The notes under the pieces are model-generated. The model saw only the letters and a program-made list of their open reading frames with translations. It was not told where the DNA came from and searched no databases. This document shows, piece by piece, positions 9,790 to 59,759 of a DNA stretch of 64,000 nucleotides; the stretch's first letter is position 1; each line of letters opens with the position of its first letter. Both the position numbers and the translations under genes were made by a program. Where the stretch lies: contig OZ218958.1 of NCBI GenBank assembly GCA_965112735.1, forward strand, positions 372,001 to 436,000, in the 5' to 3' direction. The DNA comes from Phaeosaccion multiseriatum. Its lineage: Eukaryota > Protista > Ochrophyta, other classes.

Positions 9790-12700
9790 ATGAAACGACG
9801 CTGTGAGGAGCGCCGGCAGCAAGGAGAGGCGGGAGAGGCGGGGAGGATGTTATCTCACAGTCCCCAGCAGGAGGGCGCCGCTGGTCCCTCTACTGCGTGC
9901 ACCCTCCAAGCTGGGGACAGCAGGAGCCAGACTGTAGCGGCCTGGGGTGTTCTCAATACCGTACTGCGGAGCAAGGAACTTTGGGTGTCAGCCGGGCCCT
10001 CGACGAGGTGACATCACGCACTCTCGTGCTGAATATCGCTGCACCCGCCCCTGTCCAACAGCATATGCTCGGTCTCCTCCGGTGGCAGCAGCGGGAAGAG
10101 AAGAAGCACACTGGTGCATCACCATCTCTAGCGGCAGAGGTGGGGGCCATTGGCAGCGGAGAGGGAGTGGGAGGCCTTGGGGGAGGCAAACCGAGACGCA
10201 CGTTCGGCGTTGCAGCTGTGCGCCTGGGCCCCAGCAGGAGCTACTTTCATGCTCTCGATCTGGCCTCCGCTGACGAAGCTCTGGTCACGAAGGCGTTGGC
10301 GCTATTACCGGCATCGGTCAAGCGTGTGTGTTTCTCGGACCATTTCAACCAAGCTAACATCGCCTTGCCAAGAACCGTGGAGGAGATGCAGATGGGGCGG
10401 GACTTCAACCTCCCTCTGGATCTCCCGGCTTCGCTGAAAAAGATCGCATTTGGCGAAAGGTTCAATCAGCACGTGGTCCTTCCTTGCGGTGTGGAGGAGG
10501 TGCAGATGGGGTGTTACTTCAACCTCCCTCTGGATCTCCCGGCTTCGCTGAAGAAGATCACATTTGGCGAAAGGTTCAATCAGCACGTGGTCCTTCCTTG
10601 CGGTGTGGAGGAGGTGCAGATGGGTAGGGACTTTAACCTCCCTCTGGATCTCCCCGCTTCGCTGAAGAAGATCAAGTTTATTGACTTCTCGAAGTTCAAT
10701 CAGCACGTGGTCCTTCCTTGCGGTGTGGAGAAGGTGAATACGGGGCATGACTTTAACCTCCCTTTGGCCCTACCTGCTTCGCTGAAGACGATCATATTTG
10801 GCGGAAGGTTCAATCAGCCCGTGGTCCTTCCTTGCGGTGTGGAGGAGGTGTGGATGTGGCGGGACTATAACCTCCCTCTGGATCTCCCGGCTTCGCTGAA
10901 GAAGATCACATTTAGCGGAAGGTTCAATCAGCACGTGGTCCTTCCTTGCGGTGTGGAGGAGGTGCAGATGGGCGGGACTTCAACCTCCCTCTGGATCTCC
11001 CGGCTTCGCTGAAGAAGATCACATTTGGCGAAAGGTTCAATCAGCACGTGGTCCTTCCTTGCGGTGTGGAGGAGGTGCAGATGGGTAGGGACTTTAACCT
11101 CCCTCTGGATCTCCCCGCTTCGCTGAAGAAGATCAAGTTTGATGACTTCTCGAAGTTCAATCAGCACGTGGTCCTTCCTTGCGGTGTGGAGGAGGTGGAC
11201 ATGGGGTATTATTTTAACCTCCCTTTGGAGCTGCCTGCCTCGCTGAAGAAGATCACATTTAGCGAAGACTTCAATCAGCACGTGGTCCTTCCTTGCGGTG
11301 TGGAGGAGGTGCAGATGGGGTTCGACTTCGACCTCCCTCTGGAGCTGCCTGCCTCGCTCAAGAAGATCACATTTGGCGGTTGCTTCGATCAGCACGTGGT
11401 CCTTCCTTGTGGTGTGGAGGAGGTGGACATGGGCGAGCACTTCAACCTCCCTCTGGATCTCCCTGCTTCGCTGAAGAAGATCAGATTTCGCGGACTGTTT
11501 AATCAGCACTTGGTCCTTCCTTGCGGTGTGGAGGAGGTGCAGATGGGGTATGACTTTAACGTCCCTCTGGATCTTCCCGTTTCGCTGAAGAAGATCAGAT
11601 TTGGCGATGGCTTCAATCAGCACGTGGTACTTCCTTGCGGTGTGGAGGAGGTGGATATGGGTAGGGACTTTAACCTCCCTTTGGAGCTGCCTGCCTCGCT
11701 GAAGAAGATCACATTTGGCTTTCGCTTCAACCTCCCTGTGGAGCTGCCTGCCTCGCTGAAGATGATCACATTTGGCGGTTGCTTCGATCAGCACGTGGTC
11801 CTTCCTTGTGGTGTGGAGGAGGTGGACATGGGCGAGCACTTCAACCTCCCTCTGGATCTCCCTGCTTCGCTGAAGAAGATCAGATTTCGCGGACTGTTTA
11901 ATCAGCACTTGGTCCTTCCTTGCGGTGTGGAGGAGGTGCAGATGGGGTATGACTTTAACGTCCCTCTGGATCTTCCCGCTTCGCTGAAGAAGATCAGATT
12001 TGGCGATGGCTTCAATCAGCACGTGGTACTTCCTTGCGGTGTGGAGGAGGTGGATATGGGTAGGGACTTTAACCTCCCTTTGGAGCTGCCTGCCTCGCTG
12101 AAGAAGATCACATTTGGCTTTCGCTTCAACCTCCCTGTGGAGCTGCCTGCCTCGCTGAAGATGATCACATTTGGCGGTTGCTTCGATCAGCACGTGGTCC
12201 TTCCTTGTGGTGTGGAGGAGGTGGACATGGGCGAGCACTTCAACCTCCCTCTGGATCTCCCTGCTTCGCTGAAGAAGATCAGATTTCGCGGACTGTTTAA
12301 TCAGCACTTGGTCCTTCCTTGCGGTGTGGAGGAGGTGCAGATGGGGTATGACTTTAACGTCCCTCTGGATCTTCCCGCTTCGCTGAAGAAGATCAGATTT
12401 GGCGATGGCTTCAATCAGCACGTGGTACTTCCTTGCGGTGTGGAGGAGGTGGATATGGGTAGGGACTTTAACCTCCCTCTGGATCTTCCCCCTTCACTGA
12501 AGAAGATCACATTTGGCGCAAGGTTCAATCAGCACGTGGTCCTTCCTTGCGGTGTGGACGAGGTGGAGATGGGTAGGGACTTTAACCTGCCTTTGGCCCT
12601 GCCTGCTTCGCTCCTGCTTCTCAAGCTTGGAAGGAACAACACCTGCCCCACGGAGAATCTACCTGCTCGCCTCATGGTGCTAACCGTTGGTGAGAACTAT

Positions 12701-12814
12701 CCTCTGCCTGCTGATCTACCTGAGGGGCTTTACATAAACGAGTACGAGGACGAGGACGAGGGGGGGGAGGGAGAGGAGGAAGAAGAAGATGGTGATGAAC
12801 CCGGCGATTATTGA
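9790..12814 (+). CDS. Intronless FNIP/IP22-type leucine-rich-repeat protein with F-box-like N-terminus and acidic tail; two single-G frameshifts (~9984, ~10971)
   Basis: About 39 19-aa repeats alternating FNQHVVLPCGVEEVxMGxx and FNLPLDLPASLKKIxFxxx. Restoring one G at each shift gives one ORF whose N- and C-caps align with 39188-41128. Confidence 0.85.
10343..12610 (+). repeat. Coding tandem array: 57-bp half-units / 114-bp units, with a 399-bp higher-order repeat present nearly three times (~11370-12480)
   Basis: tttggcggttgcttcgatcagcacg recurs at ~11372, ~11771 and ~12170. Confidence 0.95.
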
Positions 12815-38853: not shown

Positions 38854-39187
38854 TATTGCTCCAAGATTCTCTATACGTTCTCCCTTCTCGCTGCTCTCTC
38901 CACCGCCGCGACTACTCTTGGCAAAGAGTCAGGCAGCCATGCTGCCGGCCAGCTGCTTCGAAGTACAAAGCAAGAGAGAGAGAGAAAGTGGTTTCCGAGT
39001 GGACCCTTTTGTAAACACGTACCACCAAAGCCTTCGTTCCTCTATACAAGCGACCCAGTCTGTGTGCAGTTCCGAGTTCCTTCGCTGTGCAGAAAACGAG
39101 AGGTGATTGGCGGGAGGCCGGAGAGCTCAGGAGGGGAGACGGAGAGGAACTTCAAGGAGGGGGGGAGAGAAAGTAAAGGGGAAAGAG

Positions 39188-41034
39188 ATGGAGGGGGGAA
39201 AGAGACGAGCAGCAGCGCAAAACATTCCCTCTTCTAGTGCTTCCATGAGGCACTCAGGGGGGGGCGCTACTGAGGTAGCAGACTGGGATGGAGTGAAGGT
39301 GCTGACCCTCATTGTTGCAAACGTGGGTTCCGTCAAGAGTCTGTGGGGCTTGTGCAGAGAGGTGGATGCAGTCGTGGGGAGGCGACTCCGTCTAAACTGC
39401 CGTATGCCTAAAGCGGTTCAGCAGAGAATACTGAAGATGCTCGAGCACCAGCAGCGGCTTGAGCTTGAGCCATCTGGGGGAGGAGGAGCATCCTCTGCTG
39501 CTGGGGATGGACAAAGACCACGCGTCCAGGAGGCGCGGCGGCGGGCCCAGCAGTGTGGAGAGGGAGGAGGGGAGGTTCCCAGCAAAAGGCATTTTCGGGT
39601 CAGCGCTGTCACACTGGGTGGCAACAAGTATTCCTATCGTCCTTGTGGTGATGATTTACGGGCGGACATTGCCCTTGTCCTTGAAGGGCTGAGAGTGCTC
39701 CCTCCCTCGGTGAAGCACGTTCGCTTGGGAGATGGTTTCAGCTGTCGTGACCTGCGTCTTCCTGACGGGCTGGAGAGTGTACATTTTGGACAAGAGTTTT
39801 CCGGAGATGTCAAGCTTCCGCACACCTTGAGGGAGTTGAGCTTTGATCCTCAGCAGCCCGTATACAATCGTCCTTTGGACCTCCCCCCATCGCTGCGAAA
39901 GATCACGCTTGGGCGCTGCTTTAGCCATGACGTGACTCTTCCCAGCTCTCTGGAAGAGCTAAAGTTCGGCTGGCGGTCTTCCTTCAATCATCCGTTAACC
40001 CTGCCTGCCTCTCTTCGGACTCTGCACCTGGGAGAGAAATACAGTCTGCCCCTATCGGATCTGCCGGACGGGCTGACGGAGCTGAAATTTTCCGAGTTGT
40101 CGAGCTTTAATCATCCGTTGATCCTGCCTGCTTCTCTTCGGACTCTGCACCTGGGACTGTACTACGGGCTTTCCCTATCGGATCTGCCGGACGGGCTGAA
40201 GGAGCTGACCTTTCCCACTGACTCGTGGTTTAATCATCCGTTGATCCTTCCTCCCTCTCTTCGGACTCTGCAGCTGGGGAGGGATTTCGCGCAGCCTTTG
40301 TCGCGACTCCGGGATGGACTTGTGGAGCTCAAGTTCAGCTATTCGTCTTCCTTCAACCATCCGTTAACCCTGCCTGCCTCTCTTCGGACTCTGCACCTGG
40401 GAGAGAACTACACGCTGCCCCTATCGGATCTGCCGGACGGGCTGACGGAGCTGAAATTTCGCGCTTTGTCAAGCTTTAATCATCCGCTGGTGATCCTTCC
40501 TTCCTCTCTTCGGACTCTGGAGCTGGGGAGGGATTTCACGCAGCCGTTGTCGCGACTCCGGGATGGACTTGTGGAGCTCAAGTTCGGCTATGTGTCTTCC
40601 TTCAATCATCCGTTAACCCTGCCTCCCTCTCTTCGGACTCTGCACCTGGGACGGCACTACACGCTGCCCCTATCGGATCTGCCGGACGGGCTCAAGGAGC
40701 TGGTATTTTCCGTTTACTCGAGGTTCAATCATGCGTTATCCCTGCCTGCCTCTCTTCGGACTCTGCACCTGGGAGTGTACTACACACTGCCCCTATCGGA
40801 TCTGCCGGACGGGCTGACGGAGCTGAAATTTCGCGCCTTCTCCAAGTTTAATCATCCGTTGATCCTACCTGCCTCTCTTCGGACTCTGCAGCTGGGGTGG
40901 ATGTACACGCAGCCGCTAGCACATCTACCTGCTGGTCTGGAGCAACTCGTGGTTGGCAACGATGACCAGCTCCCCGCTCAGCTGCCAAGAGGCCTTGAGG
41001 TGGAGTACTACACGGAGGAGAGTGAGATTGATAT

Positions 41035-41076
<42 letters not shown>

Positions 41077-41128
41077 GGAGGAGGGGGAGGAGGAGGAGGA
41101 GGAGGAGGAGGAGGAGGAGTGTTCTTAA
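39188..41128 (+). CDS. Second intronless F-box-like/FNIP-type LRR protein with poly-D/E tail
   Basis: Open frame with eight ~41-aa double repeats FNHPLxLPASLRTLHLGxxYxLPLSDLPDGLxELKFxxxS. Caps are homologous to the 9790 gene. Start could also be ATG 39245. Confidence 0.88.
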
Positions 41129-58268: not shown

Positions 58269-59759
58269 ATGGCGCAGCGGACAACGTTAACGCCCGAGGT
58301 ACGACCTAGCGCCCACCTGTGAGACAGGTTTTCTTTGGAAAGCGTAGAGCAAGGCGAGGGGTCCTTCTGTGGATACGATAGCTGCGGTGGGAAGCTCACG
58401 TGTCGACGGAACAGGCAGCTCTCCGTTGATCCCTTTTCATCCGGTGTATGCGCCTCTCCCCCCGCTTTTGAGAAAACAAATGGACTCTTGTGTTTCGAAG
58501 AGAGCAGAGCGAGGGAGGGTTTTGTGGTGGATAAGATGGCTGCGGTGGAATGCTCACGTATCGAAGCAGTGAGCAGCTTCCTGTTGATCCCTTACAGCCT
58601 ATGTATATGCGTCTCTCCCCCCCATTCTCGTTTCCCTCAACAACACCAGGCGCGGCAGCTGGGGCAGGCCCTGGACAGATGGGAGAGCTTCCCCAATGTG
58701 GAAGCGCTGATTGGAAAGCTCATCGCCAAACATGGGAAAGCGAGTTTGGATCAGCCTATCTACGAAGAAGGATATACCGCAATGCGTGTGGCTGCAACAC
58801 AAGGTCGGCTGGATGTCATTGACCTTCTGCTGCGGGAAGGGGCCTCCTTCAGCACCAGAGGGGGGCCCGTTAGAAGCACGCCATTGATATCCGCTAGCGG
58901 CATCGGACACGATCAGGTGGTGAGGCGGCTGTTGGACATTGGAGCCCCTGTCGACCAAGCGAATGACCCAGGAGTTACTCCCTTGATGGTAGCATCAGAA
59001 ATGGGGCAATCCATGACAGTGCAGCAGCTGCTCTCGGCGCGCGCTAGTGTCGACTTGGCGGACGAACACGGTCGGTCTGCGATTTGGATGGCCTCTCAGA
59101 ACGGACATAGCTCTGTTGTAAGGCGCCTCATCTCAGCCCAAGCGGATGTGAACCACGCAAATAATGTCGGGAGAACTCCGCTTCTGAAGGCATCGGCCAA
59201 AGGGCATGCGGGCATCGTACAGCAGCTCATCAGCGCCCACGCCAGCATCGACAAGGCTGACGTCCACGGTGTCACTCCTCTTCACCTTGCCTGTCAGGCA
59301 GGGCACGACGCCGTGGTGGAGAAGCTTCTCTCTGCGGGAGCACGTGTGGACAAAAGGACCAACGCTGGCGCTTCAGCCCTCCACACTGCAGCGCACAATG
59401 GGCACGAGGCCGTCGTCGCTCGTCTCATCTCTGCGGGATCCCCCATCGATATCCCGGCATCAGAGACTCCTCTCCTTGCTGCCATCAACAGAGACCACCA
59501 CGGCACTGCGCGGCAGCTCCTCTCGGCCGGTGCTTCGGTGGACAAGGCCTTGGCTGGGGCACGGCGGTGGCAGCTCGGCCAGGACATCGAGCAGCGACTT
59601 CTGGAGGCGGCAGCAGCCTTCTTCCGGTCCCAAACCGCGCTGGACCTCATGCGAAGGACGGATCCGACCTTCGGCAAGGAGAGCGGAATCCTGCCGCTGG
59701 AGAGGCCCTGGAGTGTGGGGAGCGAGACGTGGGAGGGCATGGCGGAGGAGATGGGCTGA
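58269..59759 (+). CDS. Ankyrin-repeat protein with conserved C-terminal DPTFGKE domain (exons 58269-58298, 58650-59759)
   Basis: MAQRTTLTPE|gtacga...caccag|ARQLG joins in frame; about 8 ANK repeats; open to TGA. Confidence 0.85.

Follow-up and report, generated by a model that had tools for sequence, protein, structure and literature searches.

How can a tandem array within one gene keep a framework that is identical from unit to unit, synonymous sites included, while a few codons of the same units diverge? The question is raised by a gene of the ochrophyte alga Phaeosaccion multiseriatum, which lies at 39188–41128 on the forward strand of a 64,000-nucleotide stretch of DNA (the window; GenBank assembly GCA_965112735.1, contig OZ218958.1, here contig 9, positions 372001–436000). 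An earlier reading of the letters, made without database searches (the sequence-only reading), proposed that each gene of this kind homogenizes its own framework while its binding codons diversify, through strong positive selection or a targeted mechanism. Here we show that the variable codons carry a site-specific excess of amino-acid replacements and that the framework is the common property of many paralogs in the 67-Mb genome (22 contigs). We consider it likely that the gene belongs to a germline set of FNIP paralogs diversified by selection, with a shared scaffold and many putative binding ridges.

Tandem Repeats Finder (TRF) reported a 123-bp array at 39982–40918 (7.6 copies, 73% matches) together with a higher-order period of 249 bp. 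The translation resolves it into eight units of about 123 bp within 39983–40969, starting at 39983, 40106, 40229, 40352, 40475, 40601, 40724 and 40847; seven are 41 codons long and one is 42. All eight contain an exact copy of the 15-mer TCTCTTCGGACTCTG (at 40010, 40133, 40256, 40379, 40505, 40628, 40751 and 40874), as the sequence-only reading had described, with a spacing of 123 bp and a single step of 126 bp that is due to the extra codon. Each 41-residue unit consists of two leucine-rich repeats (LRRs), one of 21 residues ('L.EL.F-xxx-S-x-FNHPL.LPAS') and one of 20 ('L.TL.LG-xx-Y..PLSDLPDG'). Codon-by-codon dissection gave seven full double units (39983–40846, + strand) of types A, A, B, A, B, A and A: DNA identity is 0.80–0.93 within type A (units 1, 2, 4, 6 and 7), 0.91 within type B (units 3 and 5) and 0.63–0.69 between the types. 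The eighth unit (40847–41011, +), as read from the translation, is degenerate and merges into a C-cap (...LPAGL..L.VG....LPA.LP.GL...). The 249-bp period corresponds to an internal tandem duplication of a two-unit block (40229–40474 versus 40475–40723, +).

Variation is concentrated in six columns of the unit, each holding 12–18 different residues: two after LG, three after F and one after a fixed Ser. Patch 1 (40034–40903, +) comprises the codon pair that follows 'LxLG' in every unit: 40034–39, 40157–62, 40280–85, 40403–08, 40529–34, 40652–57, 40775–80 and 40898–903. Patch 2 (39968–40846, +) comprises the three codons after '(K/T/V)F' and the codon after the fixed Ser, in 15-bp blocks at 39968–82, 40091–105, 40214–28, 40337–51, 40460–74, 40586–600, 40709–23 and 40832–46. 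The residues are those listed by the sequence-only reading, namely EK, LY, RD, EN, RD, RH, VY and WM after LG, and GWR, SEL, PTD, SYS, RAL, GYV, SVY and RAF after F. Both type-B units have identical RD codons, so patch 1 is invariant within type B. Entropy reaches 2.9–3.4 bits in patch 1 and 2.9–3.8 bits in patch 2, against 0–0.5 in most other columns, and charged and aromatic side chains (E, R, D, K, Y, W) are abundant at the variable positions. A second gene in the window (9790–12814, the 9790 gene) has units of 38 residues, against 41 here, as had been noted from the letters, and these units vary most at the same positions as those of the present gene; the hypervariability of the six columns (2.9–3.8 bits) is family-wide.

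The scaffold that carries these positions belongs to a known family. Pfam PF05725 (FNIP) matched the open frame in nine stretches (E = 2.9e-62, 207 bits; cut-off 21 bits), and a search of the Protein Data Bank (PDB) with a profile built from the N-terminal 265 residues of 29 paralogs matched two proteins, CroV588 (6nyr; E = 2.6e-91) and CroV539 (7zal; E = 6e-38). Chains of the same two structures took ranks 1–3 when an AlphaFold model of the N-terminal region was submitted to Foldseek. To judge from this strong likeness in sequence and fold, the gene encodes an FNIP/FGxxFN leucine-rich-repeat protein, with a predicted solenoid of about 20 FNIP/FGxxFN-type repeats. In the model, the strands are the 'xLxF/L' tetrapeptides, and the variable residues come directly after them. 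The xx residues just after each β-strand are the most variable positions of the FNIP/FGxxFN family (Huyton et al. 2022, PMC9525666); the hypervariable sites coincide with them, and their hypervariability is thus a known property of the family. The published FGxxFN repeats are uniform and 22 residues long (PMC9525666), whereas here two unlike repeats of 20 and 21 residues are paired. FGxxF is present in the pre-array repeats; in the array, 'LxLGxxY' repeats of 20 residues and 'LxFxxxSxFN' repeats of 21 follow one another in turn, a variant of the 22-residue LxxLxFGxxFN. In one repeat, 'LGxxY' thus takes the place of FGxxFN, and the other has 'F-xxx-S-x-FN' with a larger variable patch. Unlike the published FGxxFN proteins, the family described here also adds its own N-terminal module and C-cap, and the selection signal reported below was measured here and not by Huyton et al. 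(PMC9525666).

Hypervariable positions in a repeat protein may simply be those that matter least. Under relaxed constraint, the six codons would be loop positions that drift neutrally, and the framework would be held by purifying selection and homogenization. That the same positions are the least conserved across FNIP repeats generally (PMC9525666) fits this explanation, which predicts that all three positions of the variable codons diverge as much as four-fold sites of the framework. Diversity was 0.54–0.65 at positions 1 and 2 of the variable codons, 0.19–0.30 at their four-fold third positions and 0.11–0.15 at four-fold sites of the framework. After correction, with 144 units from loci L001–L060 and intervals from a bootstrap over genes, positions 1 and 2 exceeded their own four-fold sites 3.05 times (2.2–7.0) and those of the framework 6.8 times (5.0–9.3) in the subfamily of this gene; in the other large subfamily the ratios were 5.3 (3.5–9.8) and 10.3 (7.9–12.5). 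Divergence that drift predicts to be equal therefore differs three- to fivefold and seven- to tenfold, and no bootstrap replicate fell to 1 or below.

Of the 18 variable-codon bases, 15 differ among the five type-A units; of the 105 framework bases, 20 do (Fisher p = 2e-7). By Nei–Gojobori counting, synonymous divergence (dS) of the framework is 0.12–0.17 within genes and 0.14–0.36 between genes, and nonsynonymous divergence (dN) of the variable codons is 1.0–1.2, near saturation. Core positions (L, F, N, G and P) show synonymous variation without replacements, and the Ser codon that stands between two variable codons has framework-level synonymous diversity. Unit pairs with only 0–2 differences in 105 framework bases still differ at 40–46% of the 18 variable bases. 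The two-unit duplication, which is recent, contains 4 synonymous changes per 60 sites and 8 nonsynonymous changes per 150 sites in its framework; its 12 variable codons contain 12 nonsynonymous changes and no synonymous one. Homogenization of the framework would, moreover, have to skip patches of 6–15 bp lying about 50 bp apart, and if converted copies were instead removed by selection, that removal would itself be selection for diversity. Third positions and adjacent codons would not escape a mutator, and replacements would gain no advantage from neutral drift; selection for amino-acid change, acting on ordinary mutations, is therefore the best reading of the data. We accordingly regard relaxed constraint as unlikely. 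Of the two causes offered by the sequence-only reading, strong positive selection is the one favoured, because the excess is specific to replacements; a dN/dS of 1 or less at these codons was not found.

The framework itself turned out not to be private to the gene. The 15-mer TCTCTTCGGACTCTG, which is made of unusual A/T-ending codons, has 94 copies in the genome, 8 in this gene and 86 in about 25 paralogs, whereas the reversed 15-mer, used as a control, has no match in the whole genome. Those paralogs, mostly on contig 12, have this gene's framework, and the DNA of the array is 75–80% identical to that of about 20 of them. Across 76 units of 17 genes, each of the five codons of the 15-mer is the same in 68–74 units. 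In a maximum-likelihood tree built from the framework alone (77 units of 17 genes, 105 framework bases), the gene label changes 49 times, compared with 16 for perfect clustering and a mean of 60.7 (minimum 52) for shuffled labels. The unit at residue 508 groups with single 'RYYTLPLSD' units of four other genes (95% in the Shimodaira–Hasegawa-like approximate likelihood-ratio test), and the type-B pair forms the sole clade specific to this gene (support 99). Units of different genes thus intermix where the sequence-only reading had expected a unit phylogeny to cluster by gene, and per-gene homogenization is rejected. Mean synonymous divergence between genes (66 pairs) is 0.182 in the framework and 0.184 in the N-terminal region; because the two are equal, recent common ancestry suffices to explain the shared synonymous sites.

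Unit exchange among paralogs is evident, a point that would also suit relaxed constraint. Identical 15-nucleotide patch-2 blocks recur across genes, but in only 1 of 11 and 1 of 17 such pairs do the two units also agree in patch 1, which lies at a distance of 57 bp. Some pairs of paralogs have near-identical N-terminal modules (proportion of synonymous differences, pS, 0.02–0.05) but arrays whose framework pS is about 0.1 and whose variable codons are for the most part not the same. Three pairs on contigs 9 and 12 can be named: L005/L006, L002/L022 and L028/L037, with an N-terminal pS of 0.017–0.027 and an array framework pS of 0.11–0.15. Either their 5′ ends were homogenized between neighbours or their arrays were reshuffled.

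Several of our observations weigh against diversification by selection on new mutations. Because arrays differ despite near-identical modules, part of the divergence consists of reassorted pre-existing units and not of new substitutions. Comparing units is not the same as comparing orthologs, and units recombine, which breaks the assumptions of tree-based tests; only counting methods were therefore used. A minimum-event count, which saturates, gave a nonsynonymous-to-synonymous ratio of only 1.2–1.3 inside the variable codons, a value that relaxed constraint would also produce. Four-fold sites of the variable codons have about twice the diversity of framework sites (bootstrap 0.97–3.5 and 1.1–2.7 in the two subfamilies); possible causes of this rise are older coalescence at selected sites, multi-nucleotide changes or a mild local increase in mutation. 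Finally, dN/dS of the N-terminal region is about 0.75–1. Being close to 1, it means that some copies may be decaying, and it too is what relaxed constraint would lead one to expect.

The doubled synonymous diversity also bears on the second cause that had been offered, a targeted mechanism: somatic or germline hypermutation, conversion from cassettes as in lamprey variable lymphocyte receptors (VLRs) or chicken immunoglobulins, or a retroelement of the diversity-generating type (DGR). Brown-algal LRR genes have been suggested to undergo somatic recombination (Zambounis et al. 2012, PMC3341825), and two features of the array are of the kind that such a process would leave, namely near-identical frameworks (0–2 differences in 105 bases) beside variable bases that differ at 40–46%, and variable patches that recur in other genes uncoupled from each other. 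The remaining evidence is opposed. The open frame is complete and is not an incomplete germline gene. Genome-wide, the best non-self match to the array DNA is 75–80% identical, no donor with this gene's variable codons was found, and the nearest units of other genes differ at 6–11 of the 18 variable bases. The search for donor cassettes suggested by the sequence-only reading thus returned only paralogs at 75–80% and one set of stray fragments (contig 11, 2.923 Mb), which is a broken remnant with other variable codons. Third positions and the fixed Ser codon are largely spared, and at positions 1 and 2 all four bases vary, without an adenine-specific pattern. No near-identical second copy of the array that could serve as a DGR template is present in the genome; a reverse-transcriptase gene was not specifically sought. 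On these grounds a targeted mechanism is very improbable.

The gene is one member of a large family. The FNIP model found 1932 candidate repeats in the genome, and a profile of the N-terminal module found 149 scored copies among 179 candidates, clustered on contigs 1, 9, 12 and 13 and present elsewhere (at least 12 contigs). Nearly all head open frames of 400–990 codons. By these profile counts, roughly 150–180 paralogs share one architecture: N-terminal module, low-complexity linker, cap, irregular repeats, regular array, C-cap and sometimes an acidic tail. The 9790 gene is a distant member. Its resemblance to the present gene in the N-terminal block, the pre-array block, the C-cap and the acidic tail, pointed out by the sequence-only reading, is real, but only at the level of the family (31–35% identity, tblastn). 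The same reading had taken the string 'LWGVSRALDEV' as continuous there; it spans a frameshift, which interrupts the N-terminal module between '...KELW' and 'GVSRALDEV...'. The 9790 gene also contains a 399-bp block (3.5 units) that is present three times at 98% identity, a triplication produced by very recent unequal crossing-over.

Nucleocytoplasmic large DNA viruses typically carry FNIP genes, and the copies could be captured giant-virus DNA, that is, endogenized viral genes whose variability would be the viral side of an arms race. Several observations agree with this. The genes lack introns although the genome contains them; Cafeteria roenbergensis virus, whose host is a stramenopile, is the source of the closest solved relatives; the weak neighbours returned by a protein language model include viral FNIP clusters, at only 0.83–0.85; and Ectocarpus FNIP genes are reported to be associated with integrated viral DNA (PMC2373305). 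Recent capture is opposed by composition, neighbours and the lack of viral relatives. Some 150–180 mostly intact copies are clustered on at least 12 contigs, and the G+C content of the locus, 0.58, equals that of its surroundings. The neighbouring genes are cellular (an EML-like WD40 protein, a PHD finger and an ankyrin protein), and the best named relatives of the EML-like gene are from Phaeothamnion (51%) and Tribonema (50%), as befits an ochrophyte that lacks close kin in the protein databases. No close relative was found among 2.9 million viral contigs (IMG/VR), and the N-terminal module is without a relative among 1.84 billion representative proteins, viral ones included. A viral origin of the family is possible; as an explanation of the present copies and their variability, we judge capture to be improbable. 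The nearby ankyrin-repeat gene, at 58335–59759, has a translation without the family's N-terminal motif.

The N-terminal module is the most conserved part outside the repeats. Its residues W, G, D, R, R and L do not vary among 33 paralogs, and when modelled alone with AlphaFold2 (AF2) it is predicted to form three helices (predicted local distance difference test, pLDDT, 72). Pfam gave no match to the modules of ten paralogs at E values up to 10. An exhaustive hidden Markov model search of the 1.84 billion representatives found no true relative (two spurious repetitive matches), a word search with the module returned FNIP-repeat matches only, and fold searches of the PDB and the ESM Atlas found no match (best PDB Z 3.3). 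Megavirus and mimivirus proteins with an F-box and FNIP repeats (PMC9525666) likewise have a short helical N-terminal domain followed by an FNIP array, and their N-terminal domain is an F-box; the module here is not detectably one. Language-model neighbours of the module were weak (0.83–0.86) and belonged to F-box or viral F-box–FNIP clusters. Genome-wide six-frame scans with PF12937 and PF00646 hit 13–25 other genes and none of the roughly 150 family modules, and a profile–profile comparison (hhalign) between 33 modules and eight F-boxes from this genome gave a probability of 1.2%. To the extent that profile and fold comparisons can tell, the module is not a demonstrable F-box and is a lineage-specific orphan domain with about 150 copies in one genome. 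A genuine F-box-like gene, L066 (contig 12, 1249723–1249836; 29.6 bits), with a 530-codon frame and without FNIP repeats, lies inside the range of the contig-12 FNIP cluster, probably by coincidence.

We propose that diversification of the paralog set by selection would work as follows. The array is built of 41-residue double units on scaffold DNA common to about 25 close paralogs, the sharing reflecting a young subfamily (synonymous divergence about 0.1–0.2). Unequal crossing-over or gene conversion would still be copying and swapping units, both inside single genes and from one gene to another, and the family has multiplied through tandem gene duplication, unit duplication and exchange. Six codons in each unit, placed right after two β-strands, would be driven near saturation by replacement selection acting on ordinary germline mutations. 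The resulting ridge of diversified residues would bind ligands, so that the family would act as a recognition repertoire; the constant N-terminal module would couple binding to a common downstream activity, and the selective agent would be fast-evolving intracellular ligands. More tentatively, and with doubts outweighing our confidence, we suggest that the family is a germline-encoded intracellular recognition repertoire, immune-receptor-like, on an FNIP scaffold, with the N-terminal module as its signalling or effector end. Selection would then be exerted by fast-evolving ligands inside the cell, for example the proteins of giant viruses, which have FNIP arrays of their own.

This mode of evolution has precedents on other scaffolds. 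The WD40, ANK and TPR repeats of fungal NOD-like-receptor-like (NLR-like) proteins, such as Podospora nwd/HNWD, combine high internal conservation, shuffling within and between paralogs and diversifying selection on a few binding-surface codons per repeat (Dyrka et al. 2014, PMC4986451). All three elements recur here as conservation of units, exchange between paralogs and selection at a few surface codons, and the evolutionary regime is the same, whereas the scaffold here is an LRR solenoid without Pfam NACHT or NB-ARC domains and in another kingdom. Closer in taxonomy are the candidate receptors of Ectocarpus, also a stramenopile alga, which has large, fast-turnover families of ROCO–LRR and NB-ARC–TPR genes with repeat-by-repeat shuffling and diversifying selection on residues of the concave face (PMC3341825). 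Their repeats occupy one exon each and are shuffled as exons, and their LRRs are classical and fused to GTPase or NB-ARC domains (PMC3341825); the gene described here has a single exon, FNIP-type repeats and an orphan partner domain. Lamprey VLRs and plant NLR/LRR resistance genes likewise present variable solvent-exposed residues on an LRR scaffold, and plant resistance genes are also clustered with sequence exchange. Their variable residues occupy strand positions 2, 3, 5 and 7, in contrast to mainly repeat positions 8–10 and 12, at the strand exit, in our array. A VLR-type locus has an incomplete germline gene with flanking donor LRR cassettes; here the frame is complete and the window is without flanking cassettes.

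The gene therefore combines a known protein family with a known evolutionary mode, in an alga from which it had not been described, and a new diversification mechanism is not needed. Its interest lies mostly in how large and young the family is and in the orphan module, whose function would tell what the family does. To our knowledge, the recognition of viruses and other intracellular parasites by unicellular and simple multicellular algae is poorly understood. A large, young, clustered family with a selected ridge is the signature of plant resistance genes, fungal NLR repeats and brown-algal ROCO genes, and on the strength of that signature the family is a concrete candidate set for algal recognition. 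It also amounts to a natural library of candidate FGxxFN binders, built on a scaffold for which structures have been solved.

The remaining features of the gene follow the family plan. An open frame of 673 codons (39107–41128, +) runs free of stops to TAA, and within it the single-exon coding sequence was placed at 39188–41128 (+; 646 codons and TAA) on the basis of the open frame, the Pfam FNIP matches and the start codon. The start was set at 39188 because the Met there is conserved among paralogs, 'MEGGKRR' being common to L011, L025, L037, L041 and L042. The gene is intact and intronless. Pfam detected FNIP alone in the 673-residue frame, and NACHT, NB-ARC or a known effector domain was not detected; the gene is most likely expressed, as a putatively cytosolic protein. 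The N-terminal module of about 70 residues (39257–39466, +), with three predicted helices, was defined by the family profile and AF2. It is followed by a low-complexity Gly/Ala/Gln/Arg linker (39476–39592, +) that aligns poorly among paralogs and differs in length; with pLDDT below 50 at model residues 97–132, the linker is probably disordered. An N-terminal cap, consisting of a strand and a long helix, and five irregular pre-array LRRs occupy 39593–39982 (+) in the AF2 model (pLDDT 81–96; strands HVRL, SVHF, ELSF, KITL and ELKF). The C-cap motif that closes the array recurs in both subfamilies of paralogs, as it does in the 9790 gene. The translation ends in an acidic Asp/Glu tail (41012–41125, +), in which TRF marked TGA/GAG runs at 41035–41119, and comparable tails are present in some paralogs (L028 and L014) and in the 9790 gene.

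An isolated, rearranged gene remnant of the same subfamily lies on contig 11 (L073:1600–1960, about 2923100–2923460). Both direct and inverted unit fragments ('...AYGSKFNHPLTLPASLRT...') are packed into 350 bp there, none of them in a long open frame, together with one copy of the 15-mer.

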